This document shows, one piece after another, positions 3,529 to 30,728 of a DNA stretch of 35,020 bases. The stretch covers positions 48,915 to 83,934 of the forward strand of contig CAXIUT010000229.1 of the NCBI GenBank assembly GCA_964035545.1. The letters run 5' to 3'. Numbering within the stretch: the first letter of the stretch is position 1; every line of letters starts with the position of its first letter. The position numbers were made by a program, and so were the translations under genes. The notes under the pieces are model-generated. The model made no database searches. It was given only the letters and a program-made list of their open reading frames with translations, and was not told where the DNA came from. The DNA comes from Bugula neritina. Its lineage: Eukaryota; Animalia; Bryozoa.

Positions 3529-6500
3529 TCATGGGACTATTTCTGATTAATTTTTTACCATTTTGTGAAAAAGTCCATTATCTGATATGAGCTATTCATA
3601 AATGCCTTCTTCTTCTACTTTTCCATCTTTTAGGACATAGATCCTATGGTTCTCTTTTATGGTTTATAAACGATGCGTGATGTTTAGAGTGGTCTTTCTT
3701 TTCATTATTCTTTAAAGAGAGTTTTGAACTTTGCTTTAATTTTAAGGATCAAGAGCGGATGTGGCTTAATCTAGAAGTAGAACTTTAGGCTATCTTAGTA
3801 GAGTTCTCGCAATAGCTATTCTCTGTTTTTGTCCTCCAGATATATGTGAACCTTTAGGCCCTACTATCTTATGCATTCCTGAACTATCTTACTCCTTTCT
3901 TAGTTAGATTTAGGTTTAGATATGTTCAAGCGCATTAATATTGTTATTTTTTTATTCTTTTTGTGGATTAGTTGGCAGTTAGGTTTAGAATAGCTAGTTT
4001 TGAGGATTGAAGTTAGCATCCAATGCAGCATCTAAAATGTCTTTATCAGAAGCTTATATTTTATTGTATTTGATATTCCAATGGATACTTTAGTTGAATA
4101 GAGTGGGTTATTGTGTAACAACACCAAAACTATTGCGGAGATGATAGAGGTCATAGTCATCAATATTTATTCCTTCTATAAAGATATTTCCTCTGGATGG
4201 TTGGTAAAATCCTAAAAGCAATGAGATAATGGTTGATTTTCCACATCCAGAAGAACCAACTAAAGCTACTGTATCGCCTGCTTTTATCTTCATATTTAGA
4301 TTATTTAGGACAAATCCTTCTCGATTTTAATATCCAAAACTAACTTCTTTGAATTAGATATTACCTCTGATCGGTTCTTTTATAAGTTTTGATCCTGATT
4401 TTTATCTTAGTTGTTCTTCGTCTTTTAAGTCTAGAAGAGAAAATGTCCATTTGGCAGCTTCTTGAACATGAGTTATATCTTGAAGTAGATTGGCTTTATT
4501 TCCTGCTGATATGCAGGCAAACAATACTAGAAAAACAGCTGACAGTGAGTTATCGATGTCTACGTCGAAGTTGACTACGAAAACGACAGCTAAAAAGAAA
4601 GTAAGGCCAAAAGTCATATATTGTAGTAAATTAGATAGTCCATACATAAAACCAGAAATAAAACTCTTCTTTAATATCGTTTAATATATATTGTCTATTT
4701 TTGTTTCATAGCGAGAAGAAACAGCCTTGAAATCACATAAACATTGAACTGTGCGGATGTTCATGACTGACTAGCTGATTATCTGAGAAGACTATTCGTA
4801 TATTTTACCTTTGGATTGGGAGAAGCCATCGATAAATCCAAATTGAATCAGTTGTGATAGGATTATTAGTGGAATAAGACCAAGAGAAGTGAGACCTGTT
4901 CTCCACTAGAGAATAAGAGAACCTATTATCGAGTAGAGGACGTTGACGGAGATGATGCAGAGGTAGGGGAGTTCGAAGGAAAGGAAAGAGTTTAGAGATT
5001 TACAGCTGGATGATAGTTTTGCTGTTATTTTTTAGTGTTGATTTTACTATTTTTAGAACCATGGAATAGACATTTTCATAAGTTTAGCAAAGATATCTTG
5101 TCTTATTTTTTTGACAGCATGTTATCCCACTAAGGCTCCAGCGATAACGGCTGAAGGATTGAAGCAGGCTGCCACAATTGCTAGTCCAATCATGATATAT
5201 ACTAGAGTATAGACTCTATTTCTATAGAATTCTTAATTCTGAGGGAATTTGAGCAAATTAGCGAGTATTTTAGCTAGTATGATTCCCACAGTAGGGAAGA
5301 GCAGTCCGTCTAGTATGACAACGATAACAAAGAAAATGAACCTGCATTTACTGATTAGTAGCATAGATAGTGCTCTAAGCAGATAATATTCAGATTAATT
5401 TTACTAGTCTTGAGGGATTGGTTTAGTATCTTATTATGCTATCACTGGTTTAATGGATTCTTGTAGTTTTTATTCCTAATTCAGAAAGGTAAGATCATGC
5501 TAATCAATAAAATTTTTATTACTTTTGGATTGTATTTAAAGATTTTATTATTTATTAGAAGGAACTAGTAGTCTTTATATTTATTTATTTTTGTTTTATA
5601 TTATTTTTATTTCTTTATTGGGGAGAAGTTGATAGACTATTTAGCAATTTTTTAGAACTCTTTTTCTATGTGTGATATTTATAGTTATAAATTACTATTC
5701 TACCTTTTTAAATGTTTTTAATATGAGTTTTTAGTTGATTCTATCGAGAGCAGATGTTGCTTCATCTAGTAGCATTAATTTAGGTTTTTTAAGTATGGAT
5801 CTAGCTATGGCTATTCTTTGTTTTTGACCTCCTGACAGTTGACTTCCTCCACTACCCACATAGGTCTAAAGCTTATCTTTGAGTTAGTTTACAAAAGAAA
5901 ATGCCTCAGCTTTAGACAAAGCTTATTATAGTTATTATTACGAGGCATCTGGTTTAACAAGAAGTAGATTTTAGCGGATAGAGGTGGCAAAGAGAGCAGG
6001 TTACTGTTGAACATATCCTATTTGTAATCTAAGCCATTATAGGTTGATATCTTTGAGATTGAGTCCATCTAGTAGGATCTAGCCTTAATTGGGATCATAG
6101 AATCGCATAAGTAATTGCAAGATAGTCGATTTGCCACATCCTGACCGACCGATCACTCCTGTATGCTTTTTATTAACAGTTAAAGATAATTTATTCAATA
6201 TATTGATGTTTTTGTTTTTGGGATAGTTAAAAATTATATCCTTTAATTAAAATATCCCATCGAATCTTTGTGGAGTTATTGCTTCTTATTTTGACTTTAT
6301 TAAAGGAGTTCTGTCTATGATAGAAAAGATTCTAAAAGCAGCTGTTTTTCCTTATGCTATTTTTTGGATAGAAGGGGTCAGTTGGTTTAGACTGATTGCT
6401 GGTAGAAAAAGAGAGTAAAATATTTTTACTACACTCCCAGCAGTATAGGCTCTTGAGCTGAGATGAGATGGACATTTTTATGATGCAAAAACACATTCAG

Positions 6501-7434
6501 AACCATACCAGAAAGCAAGTGTAAATCCTAAATACAAAGTCATGACATTTACATAGCCAATGCATGCAAGTAGCTGAGCTATTTTCATCATCTAATCTGT
6601 GGTCTCGTTGAGTATGTCATCTTGTCTTTAGCACTAGAATTACTGTGCGTTCATTTGTTTGATGAGTTTGATAGATGCTAGCGATTCTTGAGCTTTGGTG
6701 TTAGAGTGGTTATAGATTTAAGCTCTTTCTTTGAAGGCTTCATGTCTTAGTTGTACATTTTTGCCCCATGTTATAAGAATTATGGGTAGATAGGCTAGAA
6801 TTATGAGTGTGAGGATCCATCCGTTGTAGAAAGCTACTCCTAGACCTGCCAGAAGGACAGAAAAAAGCATTATAAGAGTCGATATTCTTTACCCGATTGC
6901 TTGTTAGAAAACTAGACTATCACTGGAGAAAGATTCGACGATAGCTGTAGGTTCGTGAGTATCAAACCAGGATATTTCCTGTTTAAGTAGACTTCTGAAG
7001 TATTGTTTTCGACATTCTATTGATTGTCTTTAACCTGAAATGTTCCAGGTAGAATACATGATGGTTCCAACAACTAAGGCTAGACTGCCTAATATGCCAA
7101 ATAGGGACAAGTTTTGTTTTGCTTGGTCGAGCCGGTCAGCGTCTTGGCCGAACGAGTCGATCATGTTGCCAGTCAGATGGGCAAAAACAGGTAGAGCAGT
7201 TCCCATTATCATGGAGCTGATGGTTCCTACAGTCATGAGAAAGATGTCAAATTTGGTTGCAAATCTGAAAAGTTCAAAGAAGGAAACTGACTATTTTTAT
7301 TTTTAAATTGGTTATTTTAGTATTTATTCTGATTTTTCTTTTGATGGTGGCGGTTGTTATTGTAATTATGGACGTGATCTATCTATTTGTGGGATAGTGT
7401 TAGTTTTAGTTTTCAGTTGGAGTTCAATTTACAT
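3529..7434 (-). CDS. Full-length ABCB/MDR (P-glycoprotein-type) ABC transporter, ~1301 aa, apparently intronless
   Basis: TMD-NBD-TMD-NBD layout: ISG[E]RQ, Walker [10 protein letters not shown] and [10 protein letters not shown]-loops QQ[E]P and TQ[E]P, signatures [13 protein letters not shown] and [13 protein letters not shown], Walker [11 protein letters not shown] and LLLD[TAA]ATSALD. Track ORFs 7030-7236, 4402-4647 and 4108-4293 all lie in this one frame. Confidence 0.95.
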
Positions 7435-7662
7435 TAAATATTTTTATATTTAGAATATAACATCAAGGCGTTTTATGGAAACTGGCGGTGAACCAAATAG
7501 AATGGATAAATCTCTTTTCTAATAGGTAAAAAGATAGATTTGTCTTAAAAGATTAATTTAAATAATAAAAACATCAAAATTAGATAGATTGATATTGGCT
7601 GATATAGTCTGATAGGTTTTATTGCACTGAAATATATTGAGTGATTGTGGTATAATTACTTA

Positions 7663-10600
7663 ATGATCTCGAATCAATTCAAACGTCTTCTTTTGATCCT
7701 TGTAGTCCTCTACTTGGGTTTTAGTTGCTAGCCTGGGTAGTTCGATGACGGAGGTATTTGCAGACAATGTCCTTCTAGAAGTTTTTCATTGACAGGAAAT
7801 GGTACTTCTTGTGTTGTTTGTTCTGACTGTCTTGATTGCGACCCTTCAACCGGTTAATGTACAAATTGCTAGCCTGGATTTCAGCCATCCAATTTTATTT
7901 GTACACCATGCGATGCCAATAGTTTTTCAACAGGAATGGCCTGTCAGGAATGTACTGGCTGTCTTAGTTGCAATCAAACGAATGGATAATGCTCTAGTTG
8001 TGCTGTCAACTTCTAGCAAATAAGCAACAATTGCAGCGCCTGTCCTTTAGGTACATATTCTACTGGAGGGACTTCTCTATGTCTCGAGTGCGAATAGAAT
8101 TGCAACAACTGTACTGGGTTGCTGGGAGAGGAGTGTTTGGATTGCGTTGAGAACTATGTGGTCGAGAATGGAACTTGTACTAGAGTCTGTCAAATATCAA
8201 ATTGTTAAATTTGTTCTTCTAATGTCTGCTAGTTATGTGTGAGTGGATATATTCTGGTGGGTGGGACTTGCACTTTGCTATGCAGTATTGCTAACTGTAC
8301 TACCTGTCGATCTGCTATACTGGGTGAATGCTAGGTCTGTGGGATGGGATTGGTGCCTACCACTGACTTGACTGCTTGCGTGGCCTGCTCCATTGCTAAC
8401 TGTGTCAGTTGTAGTTCCAAGGGAGAGTGTGAGGTGTGTCTTGGAGATTTGTAGGTGCAGAAGGGAGGAGGGTGTTTTAGTTGTCGGGTAGATAACTGCT
8501 ATAATTGTGTTTCTGATAATTTATGTGACAGTGAGGGTTGTTTCTCAGGGTATCACTTCAATGCTAACTCTACGTCAAGGAGTGACCAGTGTTTGGCTTG
8601 TAGTGATCCCTGCATGACTTGCTATAGTGATGGCAGTTGTTCTATGTGCAAGGCTCCTTATAGTCAGGCTATTTTATCCCAAGGTCAGCTATGTTTCTTC
8701 TGTGATGATGCCAGATGTACTAGTTGCATCAACACTGCTCCAGGAACATGTACTGCTTGTTCTTCTGAGTATACTCTTAACACTATAAGTGGCATTTGCT
8801 AGTTGATTTGCTCAATTGGCTGTTCTGACTGTTCATCATCATCTATCTGCAATGTCTGCTAAGAGTACTACTATCTTGATAATAACACTTGCCAGCAGTG
8901 TCCCAGTGTGCCATCTGTTCGAATCTGCAATGCCTCTAATCCAACTGAAGCTCTTTCCTGTGGTACCTATTTTTACCTTGATGGTAACAGCACTTGCCAG
9001 CCTTGTGCTGCTTTCTGTGCTGAATGCGGTTCAGCTACGAATTGTACTAAATTGTTCAACTCTGAAGGATATACTCTTGTGATGACTTCAGCTACAACTA
9101 ACTCTATGGCTTCCTGCGATCCTGGTTGTAAAAGTTGTTCATCTTCCTACCATATTTACTGCACCTAGTGCTTGTAGGGGTTCTATTTATCTAGTTCAGG
9201 CGTATGTCTTATCTGCAGCTAGGCTAATTTATGTGCATCATGTTCGCCTGCTGCTCCATCGATCTGTTTGAGTTGTTTCCCAGGATCTTATCTCAGTGCT
9301 AACTCTATTTGCGTTAAATGTGTTTTTCCTTGTGTAGCTTGTAGTAATCAAAACGCATCTGCTTGTACTTCTTGTGTAGCAGGGTATAGTCTACTCTCTA
9401 ACAATACTTGTGTGTTATCTTCTTCTCTTGGTTTTAACTCTTCTGTGGTTGATAACTGTGCTGGTTCTTAGGTTACTGCTGCTGATGGTGCTAGTGTATT
9501 TAGTTGTTTGGTCTGTGAGCAGGGCTATGTTTTTAGTTCTGGTTGTGTGCTATGTGCTTAGGGATGTTCTGTTTGTGATCCTGATAACTTTGCTCAATGT
9601 TTAAGTTGCATGCCTGGCTACACTCTTAACTCAAATAGCGTCTGCACTGCTTGTTCTTTTAGCAATTGTATAGAATGTGAAAGTTTCGGGTGTTTGGCTT
9701 GTGCTAGTGGATACCTACTAAACCAAAATTTTGAGTGTCAGCAGCAATGTCGAATTCCATGTGCTACTTGTGACAAATTCAATCCATTTTCTTGTTTATC
9801 TTGTCTTTAAGGATATTCAATGAGCAATGGTCAATGCATACCTGACACGAGTTGCAATACTAAAGCGAATTGCTATAGTTGTCCTCAGGGATTCGCTTTT
9901 GTATTTACTAACACAAACACAACTATCAACCAAACTTGTCTATAATGCGATTCTTCATCCAATTGCGCCAGATGTTCAAGCACTAATACCTCGCAGTGTT
10001 CTCTTTGTTCCTTTGGAACTTTTTTGAAAGGAACCATCTGTCTCTCTTGTCCTGATGGTTGTGACGATTGCATCAGTGAGACTATGTGCACTTCCTGTGC
10101 TCCTGGCTACATTGCTGAGCAGACTGCTGCGTTAAGTGGGAATAGTGGAAGTGGTTTGGTGAATTGTAAGATATGTGAGTCACCTTGTGCAAGCTGTGTG
10201 GGGAGTGTTTCTAGTTGTAGTTCTTGCAATAGTGGTTTTCAGTTGGAAGGAGTGGCTTGTATAAGCAATTTTAACTATCAGGTCAATATAACTTTGGGTG
10301 TTTCTCTTCAAGAATTTAAAACTAACTATCTCACCTTTTTGAACCAGATAGCAGCAGCAGCGAATGTTACTCTTAAAAAAATAGTTATCTTAAGTATAGT
10401 TAGCGGATCAGTTATAGTCAATATGCAAATCAGTTCAAACTAACAGGCTGGATCTTCATCTGCTATCGCCACTCAATCTAGCCTCGATTCTTTGATTAAT
10501 AGTGCAGAAGTGGGAAATATGCCAGTGACTTCATCGACTCTATCGACGAATGGAGGATCTAATGATGCAAGTAATGGTTCTGGTAGCAATGATGACGATA

Positions 10601-18249: not shown

Positions 18250-18795
18250 ATGAAGGGGTTGGGGTTGGGGTTGGGGTTGGGGTTGGGGTTGGGGTTGGGG
18301 TTGGGGTTGGGGTTGGGGTTGGGGTTGGGGGAAGAAGAACTGCTGCACTTAGATCAAGTGATTTCTTCCTATTTATTGAAAAGAAAGTAGATCAAAATTA
18401 ATGACGAGTCTCTTGAATCTAAAATAAGAGGACAGTTATTATCTTTAGAGTAGAAGAACGAATATTTAATGAAAGAAGTCGATATTATGACTAGAAATTA
18501 TGAACGAGAGATTTAGGAGGTGAAGAATAGTAATTCACATTGGCAAAATCAGCCTGAGTAACTTAGCTAAAGTAGTCCTTATCACTAGTTGGTTATGGAG
18601 TTAATTCAGGCGCTTTCTCCTTTTAAGAAAGTGACTGAATATCTGACTAAATTGTAGATAGCTAAGAAGTAAAATAGGGATCATTAAGTTGTAGCCCATC
18701 ATACTCATTAGTATTTTGAAAAAGTCAATTAAATAATGGAAAGTGATCTTAGAGAAGAAGATTTTAACGATGATTTTACTTAGAATTACTACTGA
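18250..18795 (+). CDS. Hypothetical coiled-coil protein (181 aa including 24 aa read from the telomeric tract)
   Basis: ATG AAG (GGG TTG)12 GGG GAA GAA GAA CTG... open to TGA 18793; MK(GL)12GEEELLHLDQVISSYLLK... Confidence 0.6.
18255..18330. repeat. Internal telomeric tract GGGG(TTGGGG)12
   Basis: Perfect G4T2 repeats on the + strand, i.e. right-end orientation relative to the telomere at 1-69. Confidence 0.97.
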
Positions 18796-28639: not shown

Positions 28640-30476
28640 ATGAGGATAATAAAGTTGGAAATATAGATTCTTTATCGTGGTCGATTGACCATCCAGAAAA
28701 GAGCAGTTTCCCTTGATAAGAAAGAGACGAGCACTTTGTCTGCTTTTATTCAACATGTAGTTTAAGTTTGTGAGTTGAATGGAGAATATGCTATTGAAAT
28801 TGATGGCTTTGTTATTTCTGATAAATAAAATAGTAAAATACTACAATAAAAAGCTATCTATAGGTATATTTTCTTTATATTAGACTTAAACTCATTAAAT
28901 ATAAACAAAAAAAGTTGAAGAAGAACCAAGTCTAATCATCAAATTCTGAGGAAAGTTAAGGTATTTAATTAGACGATTCAATAGAGTAAGTCAAAGCTTT
29001 TCGTAAATAAAAAATTAACTAAATAAACTCAATAAAAGAAATAAGATCTAAAAAATAACAAAAAAAAAACAAACAAGTCATTAAAGCAAAAAGATTAAAT
29101 TTATCATAAAGCGAATAAATATCTTAATAGCTCGAATAAAAAGTAAATCAAAAATAGATTAAAAATAAAGATAACAACCTTAAAATAAATAATCTAAGCA
29201 AGAAGGATAAAATACAGTCAAATAATTCAGTTAACAAAATAGAAGAAGCAAAAAAAAGAAAAGAAGTACTTTAATAGTAATAATAATAATAATAGTCTTC
29301 ATCAGAGTCAATACCTCAACTTTCTAAAGTAACAAATAAACATCCTTTATTGAAAAAAGTCAATGATAAGCCTATAAAATTATCAATTAAAAAGAGAAGA
29401 GATATAATATCTGATTCTTCTTAATCTCTTTCTTCTTTATAAGAGATTAATAAGAAATAGAAGTAGCCTTAAAAGACAATAAATGTAAATAATACAACTA
29501 CTATAAGAACTACTTCTAAACTTCCATCAGCTCTGAGAAATAAGGTTATAGCATCCAAAAAGTTCACTATTCATAAGTAGAACCAATGGCTGTCTCTTGA
29601 TAGATAGAAAATGACTCGATGGCAATAGTAGAAGGATAGAAAGGTATTTTGTCAACCTCCAAATAAAATAAAATTTAAAATAATATAATTGGACTAATAG
29701 AGATTTGTACCTGTGAAATCGAATTGGATTTCTGGAGAAGTAAAAGCTATCGAAGATGATGTTATTATAATGTAGAATGTAGATCAATAAGGCAAATAAT
29801 TTATGAAATAATATAAAATACCTGAACACAATATGGATTAACTACAAATATGGAAACCTCTAGCCTCTTTATAACAACTAAAATATCTATAATCATCGAA
29901 AAATATTCAAGAATTCTAGAATCTTATCAAAAATAAATAGAATCTTTCAAAATAAAAATAGATACTAGATAAAGAATAGGTGAATTAGTCTAAAAATAAA
30001 GAATAAGTAGATAATCAGTCTAGAAATAAAGAATAGATAAATTAGTCTAGAAATAAAGAATAAGTAGATAATAAGTCTAGAAATTCAATATAGAGATTTA
30101 TTTGCGGACAAATAAACTATTATTTCAGTGACCGTAATTATAATATAGATTTTTTTATGCAACTTCATGCAAATACTCATCCTTAGAAATGTAATAATTT
30201 TTCGATAAAGATTTGAAGTTAGGTTTTATGTTGAACTTTCCGAAAATAAAGAAATTACTAAGAGATTAATAAAAATTGGTTCAATACCTAAGGGAAGACG
30301 ATAAATACTAAAATAGAAACTATGAAATCAATTTTGGATAAAGATTAATTCGAAAAAAACAAATCAAATCTATCGATAGGGTGTAATAACAGGATATTCA
30401 ATTTTAAAAAGCTTAAAAATAAGTTCAATAATATCATGAAAAAGATGAAACAGTTTTAAACCAAAAAAATGATTGA
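28640..30476 (+). CDS. Coilin-like protein (N-terminal domain + Tudor-like domain) with a C-terminal La motif, ~598 aa, 2 introns
   Basis: N-terminal MRIIKLEI...TLSAFIQHV...IEIDGFVISDKENSKILQEKAIYRL; low-complexity K/E/S middle; PNKIKFKIIELDEERFVPVKSNWISGEV; ICGQINYYFSDRNYNIDFFM...MLNFPKIKKL...RLIRKK. Introns 28864-28883 and 30191-30210 (20 nt each). Confidence 0.7.
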
Positions 30477-30513: not shown

Positions 30514-30728
30514 AACTAGTAATAAGAATAACTAATAATAACTAATAATAACTAGTAATAACTAGTAATAACTAGTAATAACTAGTAATAACTAGTAATA
30601 ACTAGTAATAACTAATAATAACTAGTAATAACTAATAATAACTAATAATAACTAGTAATAACTAGTAATAACTAATAATAACTAGTAATAACTAATAATA
30701 ACTAGTAATAATAAATAGCAAATAACTA
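30514..30728. repeat. Intergenic satellite (ACTARTAATA)n, 10-bp unit x~20
   Basis: actagtaata/actaataata units between two convergent stop codons. Confidence 0.95.

Follow-up and report, generated by a model that had tools for sequence, protein, structure and literature searches.

A predicted La-motif protein of peritrich ciliates with a coilin-like domain layout

Results

Gene model and conservation

The stretch of DNA analysed here, which we call the window, comprises 35,020 nucleotides of contig CAXIUT010000229.1 in the Bugula neritina assembly GCA_964035545.1 (forward strand, positions 48,915 to 83,934). On its plus strand, at positions 28640-30476, it carries a gene that is predicted to encode a protein with a La motif (LaM) at its C-terminal end. 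The region is AT-rich, with a local GC content of about 24-27%, and after removal of two 20-nt GT..AG introns it reads as a single frame of 598 codons, with 66 TAA or TAG codons in frame, that closes at a lone TGA. From the local base composition, the chance of 598 codons free of TGA is about 1.7e-5. Exon 1 (28640..28863, plus strand) runs from the ATG to the second base of codon 75 and encodes most of the N-terminal domain; its start and its end are the same in the four other species described below. It is followed by intron 1 (28864..28883) and by exon 2 (28884..30190), which holds the first linker, the middle domain, the second linker and the first half of the La motif. Intron 2 (30191..30210) lies within the La motif, after the first base of codon 511, and exon 3 (30211..30476) supplies the second half of the motif, a short tail and the TGA stop (30474-30476), all on the plus strand. 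Keeping intron 1 brings a TGA into frame within 20 codons, and the Pfam La profile is contiguous over positions 1-59 only across the spliced junction, which validates intron 2.

Orthologues were sought with a 30-aa stop-free piece of the La motif against 1.8 billion representative proteins, which returned the fragments P0001 and P0003; contig tracing, a metagenome scan and a further search, this time with a 134-aa stop-free piece, then yielded four further species from wastewater and other metagenomes. Throughout, the database searches covered domain translations of up to 111 aa (translation table 30) and stop-free pieces. The four orthologous proteins are 566 aa (orthologue A, L002, from activated sludge), 551 aa (orthologue B, L009 and L006, which overlap at 99.9% identity), 562 aa (orthologue C, L010) and 592 aa long (orthologue D, L011), and their genes have 16-30 sense codons of the type TAA or TAG (TAR) each, at a GC content of 31-47%. 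One further match of the search with the 30-aa piece, P0002 (333 aa, repetitive), was discarded as spurious, having been matched through a repeated short motif.

Comparison of the sequences confirms that this is a conserved gene, present in at least five peritrich ciliate species. Across a GC range of 25-47%, the five proteins (551-598 aa) begin at the same point and agree in domain order, and their genes share both intron positions. The introns interrupt identical codon positions in every species; intron 1 is always 20 nt long and intron 2 measures 20, 21, 20, 20 and 20 nt, and the intron sequences have diverged while the adjoining exons are conserved. Nine of the ten introns have an A at position 15, the exception being intron 1 of the window (28864-28883), which has a T there, with A at positions 14 and 16. 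Mean pairwise identity among the five species is 0.52 in the N-terminal domain, 0.66 in the middle domain and 0.73 in the La motif, as against 0.27 in the first linker and 0.28 in the second, a domain-wise pattern that is expected under purifying selection. No flanking genes are shared between the window locus and the orthologous loci, and the three coding blocks thus travel together as one unit. A preliminary description of this DNA had read the region as a putative ciliate coilin fused to a La RNA-binding motif, encoded by one spliced open reading frame with two 20-nt introns and comprising three globular parts between low-complexity linkers. Its gene model and its division into blocks and linkers are upheld by these comparisons, and the stretches that it quoted were found at 29665-29691 (KIKFKIIEL) and 30085-30359 (the La motif).

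Genetic code

The same description had presupposed a code in which TAA and TAG specify glutamate, and codon comparison supports this reading in the gene. In the five-species alignment, TAR codons are paired with GAR (GAA or GAG) 161 times and with CAR (CAA or CAG) 26 times, the same profile as that of GAR codons themselves, and the residue on which all other species agree opposite a TAR codon is Glu in 17 cases and Gln in 1. A second gene of the window, an ABC transporter (ABCB type, two nucleotide-binding domains) at 3532-7785 on the minus strand, provides direct evidence for the Glu code, since the invariant Walker-B glutamate of its second nucleotide-binding domain is encoded by TAR; both of its LSGGQ glutamines are CAR. 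Glutamine was considered as the meaning of TAA and TAG because two TAR codons of the La-motif gene face CAR in the orthologues, and it was ruled out by the codon-pairing counts. Codon 9, which encodes the second Glu of an N-terminal KLEIE/KLQIE motif, is a TAA or TAG in five of five orthologues, even in the GC-richest species, which has only 16 such codons.

The La motif

The La motif (30085..30359, plus strand, aa 476-560, split by intron 2) is, by its sequence, certainly genuine. The spliced translation matches Pfam PF05383 from position 1 to 59 of 59 at 51.5 bits (cutoff 37.1) with an E-value of 9.2e-14, as befits the clear La motif of the preliminary description, and the stop-free first half alone matches La positions 1-26 at E 1.4e-6. 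The closest solved LaMs in the PDB are those of S. pombe SPAC1527.03 (LARP1-like), LARP6, genuine La and LARP7; their E-values (5e-5 to 4e-3) are too alike for a subfamily to be assigned. The 3'-end pocket of human La, which we take to consist of Q20, Y23, Y24, D33, F35 and F55 (the last three mapped by eye from the alignment), has its counterpart in residues Q484, Y487, Y488, D497, F499 and F520 of the window protein. Q20 and Y23 are confirmed as pocket residues of human La, and mutation of the corresponding Q and Y abolishes 3'-end binding in Mlp1 of Tetrahymena (PMC9705548). All five of our species keep the Q and Y of the QxxYYF motif unchanged, and the columns CGQxNYYFSD, DFFMQ and MLNFPKIKK are likewise invariant.

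The La motif is followed only by a short, charged tail (30360..30473, plus strand) of 38 aa, or 40-46 aa in the orthologues. With 38-46 residues left in all five species there is no room for an RNA recognition motif (RRM), and a Pfam search of aa 476-563 gave no RRM match, which agrees with the earlier observation that none follows.

The two upstream domains and the linkers

The middle domain (29518..29895, plus strand, aa 287-412) comprises a conserved K-L-P-x-A-L-R motif, a helix and a small beta-barrel with its core at 29665-29880. It has no Pfam match to the LSM family at E <= 10, and matches to DUF3914 and DUF3273 (E 0.06-0.08) fell far below their cutoffs and were rejected. An AlphaFold2 model of an orthologous middle-domain piece (predicted local distance difference test score, pLDDT, 48) shows a helix and then four strands, the strands at residues 66-117. 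Sm/LSm barrels, rather than the listed Tudor domains, dominate the neighbours of this model in both structure searches. A search of the ESM Atlas gave nothing usable by features (best score 0.78) and template-modelling (TM) scores below 0.45 by shape. From this model, and with shallow folding alignments behind it, we tentatively describe the middle domain as a small beta-barrel of the Sm/Tudor type preceded by a helix.

For the N-terminal globular domain (28640..28899, plus strand, aa 1-80, split by intron 1), neither aa 1-83 nor the 67-aa and 44-aa stop-free orthologous pieces had a Pfam match even at E <= 10, and phmmer of the domain against the PDB returned nothing. The AlphaFold2 model of the orthologous 67-aa piece, which is without the first strand, consists of a helix, two strands and a helix (pLDDT 59.5); with it, Foldseek found only noise in the PDB, and TM scores by shape in the ESM Atlas were below 0.45. 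A designed TPR protein found with the N-terminal profile in the PDB (E 2e-6) was rejected as the sum of three 20-residue matches to 'IKxxxKAVSLD', each with an independent E-value (i-E) of at least 1.3.

The first linker (28900..29517, plus strand, aa 81-286) is disordered and heavily gapped in the alignment. It is composed of 19% K, 18% E, 13% S and 10% N, and contains KKRK at aa 198 and KKRR at aa 244, two basic clusters that resemble nuclear localisation signals. Within the second linker, an in-frame tandem repeat (29969..30084, plus strand) with a period of about 30/57 nt encodes NKEE-type repeats; in the alignment this insertion occurs in the window species only and is absent from orthologues A-D.

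Comparison with coilin

Coilin was represented by the Pfam models PF15862 (Coilin_N) and PF23086 (coilin Tudor) and by profiles of 24 N-terminal fragments, mammalian only, and 31 Tudor fragments from vertebrates. The fragments retrieved for these profiles were 93-100% identical to the query seeds, carry PF15862 or PF23086, and are in several cases named coilin by their source. No coilin chain was found in the PDB by sequence.

The N-terminal 80 or so residues had been held to fit the coilin-N pattern, and this proposal found no support. There was no match to PF15862, and hhalign of the five-species profile against the 24 Coilin_N fragments gave a score of 11.8 (P 0.21). A greedy run aligned the two colinearly and in the register expected, at a score of only 8.8 and P 0.62. 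Residues R8, R36 and D79 of coilin are needed for self-association and for binding of Nopp140 (PMC9556525). In the non-significant P 0.62 alignment, R36 stands against S/R/S/K/A and D79 against A/G/D/N/G in the five species, and R8 is unaligned.

The middle domain gave a more suggestive result. Against the 31 vertebrate fragments, hhalign aligned the five-species profile in the very register that the preliminary description had proposed for its Tudor-like part, with the segment QPPNKIKFKIIELDEERFVPVKSNWISGEV. At a permissive setting the alignment was colinear over 104 columns, down to the C-terminal W..L, and took in the common motifs KI.FK..EL, P..S, G, EY and W..L; its score of 21.6 (P 0.0064) is a weak match. 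This score was reached by none of 300 column shuffles (maximum 19.4) and none of 300 shuffles of six-column blocks (maximum 20.1), and the reversed profile scored 7.7. However, a decoy comparison of the middle domain with Coilin_N reached 17.7, so that 21.6 is not far above noise. HMMER with its filters off gave about 0 bits against coilin for both domains, and PF23086 did not match the middle domain even at E <= 10, including the complete 134-aa orthologous piece (L001:534-935). The register and a weak colinear likeness stand, and we treat the link between the middle domain and the coilin Tudor domain as a hint and not as a finding. There is also no RG box in the five species, which have 0-1 RG dipeptides per protein.

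Surroundings of the gene

Each of the four orthologous loci carries a tRNA-Leu(AAG) gene, nearly the same in sequence in all of them, that precedes the start codon of the La-motif protein by about 105 nt on the opposite strand (minus; L002:591-670, L009:1540-1619, L010:3909-3988 and L011:3847-3926). The window contains no tRNA genes, and blastn found no remnant in it; this linkage of an RNA polymerase III (Pol III) gene to the La-motif gene is conserved in the orthologues and lost in the window species. About 50 nt after the stop codon of the window gene begins a 10-nt tandem repeat, AATAACTAGT, which occupies 30527-30711 with 18.5 copies and 94% matches. Elsewhere in the window there is an internal array of G4T2 telomeric repeats (18254-18330), and the window may therefore join two small chromosomes or contigs.

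Discussion

What flanks the La motif decides to which of a few families (La, LARP1, 4, 6 and 7) a protein is assigned, and LARP1 is defined by a DM15 region C-terminal to its LaM. With this superfamily the window protein shares a full-length La motif above the cutoff and the QxxYYF...D.F...F pocket. Unlike its members, it carries the LaM near its C-terminus, with about 40 residues after it, lacks RRM1, xRRM, DM15, PAM2 and LSA, and has upstream partner domains that match no family. Genuine La, LARP4, LARP6 and LARP7 have an RRM directly after the LaM, whereas the window protein has none, and it differs from LARP1 in offering no sequence space for DM15 behind the motif. LaMs that act without an RRM have precedents in LARP1 (PMC11259064) and in the alveolate protein Mlp1 (PMC9705548), an exception to the rule that a La motif needs an RRM.

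Among ciliates, the protein can be compared with Mlp1 of Tetrahymena, an alveolate La/DUF3223 'genuine La' of 340 aa in which the LaM is N-terminal and DUF3223 is C-terminal (PMC9705548). Both are ciliate LaM proteins without an adjacent RRM, and both conserve the Q and Y of the pocket, but the LaM of the window protein is C-terminal and leaves no room for DUF3223 after it. Pfam detected no DUF3223 upstream of it either, whether in the two conserved domains or in the linker pieces, and orthology to Mlp1 is ruled out by the reversed architecture together with the absence of DUF3223 from the parts scanned. For alveolates, the sections available to us of a eukaryote-wide survey of La and LARP proteins list only La/DUF3223 and LARP7, and describe p65 of Tetrahymena and p43 of Euplotes as LARP7-family proteins that bind the 3' ends of small RNAs in the assembly of ribonucleoproteins (RNPs) (PMC7928011). 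These, too, are ciliate La-family proteins, but they combine an N-terminal LaM with RRM1 and a C-terminal xRRM2, and the window protein has none of that arrangement.

Coilin, which is present in animals and plants (PMC3539977), resembles the window protein in layout. Its N-terminal domain and its small barrel are conserved, and between them lies a disordered, poorly conserved stretch with a nuclear localisation signal; that source describes no La motif in the animal or plant protein (PMC9556525). Coilin is further marked by an RG box in its disordered region, by self-oligomerisation, by its place in Cajal bodies and by binding to Sm, SMN and Nopp140. Its parts follow the same order in the window protein, where a long, charged and variable linker with clusters of basic residues separates an N-terminal domain (about 80-90 aa, conserved) from a small barrel that is likewise conserved; this protein departs from coilin in that neither domain has a Pfam match, R36 and D79 are not conserved, an RG box is missing and a La motif is added. 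The comparison supports the description of the product, at the level of sequence, as a La-motif protein with a coilin-like layout.

We lean, with modest confidence, towards the view that the gene encodes a peritrich La-motif protein of an architecture undescribed for the La and LARP families, which probably binds RNA 3' ends as an adaptor in the nucleus. The architecture in question would be a small N-terminal domain, a disordered linker some 200 residues long, a helix with a barrel of the Sm/Tudor type, and a C-terminal LaM without an RRM. Through its canonical pocket residues, the La motif would hold the 3' ends of small nuclear RNAs, candidates being Pol III transcripts with a U tail (pre-tRNA, U6 or telomerase RNA, for instance). 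The other two conserved domains may bind protein partners or self-associate, and the acidic, serine- and lysine-rich linker may direct the protein to the nucleus and confer multivalency, so that the whole would contribute to RNP biogenesis as an adaptor or scaffold. Three features lead us to infer a nuclear adaptor: a La pocket that is intact, a charged linker with KKRK and KKRR clusters, and two conserved partner domains. Several points weigh against this view. RNA binding, nuclear localisation and the scaffold role are all inferred; the single transcript is predicted from DNA; and the low confidence of both structure models (pLDDT 48 and 59.5) makes the fold assignments tentative. In addition, Tetrahymena, Paramecium or other eukaryotes may have homologues that are annotated already, and the signal from the coilin Tudor comparison, weak as it is (P about 0.006), may mean that so cautious a reading understates the nature of the protein.

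This last point leads to the proposal of the preliminary description, namely that the protein is a true coilin-La fusion, in which a diverged Coilin_N and a coilin Tudor-like domain would form a ciliate Cajal-body scaffold with an added La motif. The La motif and the coilin-like layout of this proposal hold good; the coilin identity of the other two blocks is conjectural. In its favour are the layout itself, which matches that of coilin (PMC9556525), the Tudor comparison, whose score of 21.6 (P 0.0064) none of 600 shuffles reached, and the occurrence of coilin in both animals and plants (PMC3539977), which makes an ancient origin plausible. Set against these, no species tested has a Pfam match to Coilin_N or to the coilin Tudor domain, the N-terminal comparison stays at P 0.21 and HMMER near 0 bits for both domains, the decoy score of 17.7 leaves 21.6 not far above noise, and the likeness was picked out after the fact from a wide choice of families. 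In the best N-terminal alignment R36 and D79 lack conserved counterparts, no RG box is present, and the coilin profiles are from vertebrates only. The neighbours of the middle-domain model are, moreover, Sm/LSm barrels, and its preceding helix is placed as in the Sm fold. On balance we consider a coilin-La fusion unlikely, though worth keeping in view. The same structural likeness, to Sm/LSm-fold domains such as those of Edc3, LSm14/Scd6, Gemin6/7 and Lsm, which have an N-terminal helix and a bent sheet of five strands and are the best neighbours of the model with its predicted helix followed by a bent beta-sheet, would suit a divergent LSm and La-motif protein of cytoplasmic messenger RNPs. 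In such a protein a barrel of the Edc3/LSm14 type would be joined to a LaM that, in the manner of LARP1, engages poly(A) or the 3' ends of mRNAs, and the protein would regulate mRNA stability or translation. The middle domain, however, matches no Pfam LSM family at E <= 10, partner motifs of the FDF, DM15 and PAM2 types are absent, and the KKRK and KKRR clusters with the acidic-serine tracts suggest a nuclear or nucleolar location. We consider this reading quite improbable.

An artefact of the gene model, with the La motif or the N-terminal exon belonging to a separate gene, or a locus that is not expressed, must also be weighed. The locus was found in five sequencing runs, none of them on record as RNA; the four examined are DNA contigs that keep both introns, and the runs flagged as possibly RNA had no matching words from the locus. 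This want of RNA reads, and an intron 1 in the window without the A15 of the other nine introns, would fit an artefact. Yet a TGA-free frame of this length has a chance of only about 1.7e-5, five species keep the frame open over its whole length from the ATG to the stop, introns and domain order are kept despite unrelated flanks, the La profile spans intron 2, and conservation follows the domains. We regard an artefact as very improbable.

We know of no coilin outside animals and plants. Were the fusion true, coilin would be older than the split between animals or plants and alveolates, a scaffold of the Cajal-body type would grip RNA 3' ends (U6, pre-tRNA or telomerase RNA) directly, with its RNA contacts hard-wired through domain fusion, and ciliate Cajal bodies and their scaffold would become testable with a single tagged gene. 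On the reading that we prefer, of a La-motif protein that is probably a nuclear adaptor, the gene would represent the second RRM-less arrangement in alveolates after Mlp1, with the LaM placed C-terminally behind two conserved domains, and would be a candidate for a part in the way ciliates handle the 3' ends of small RNAs.

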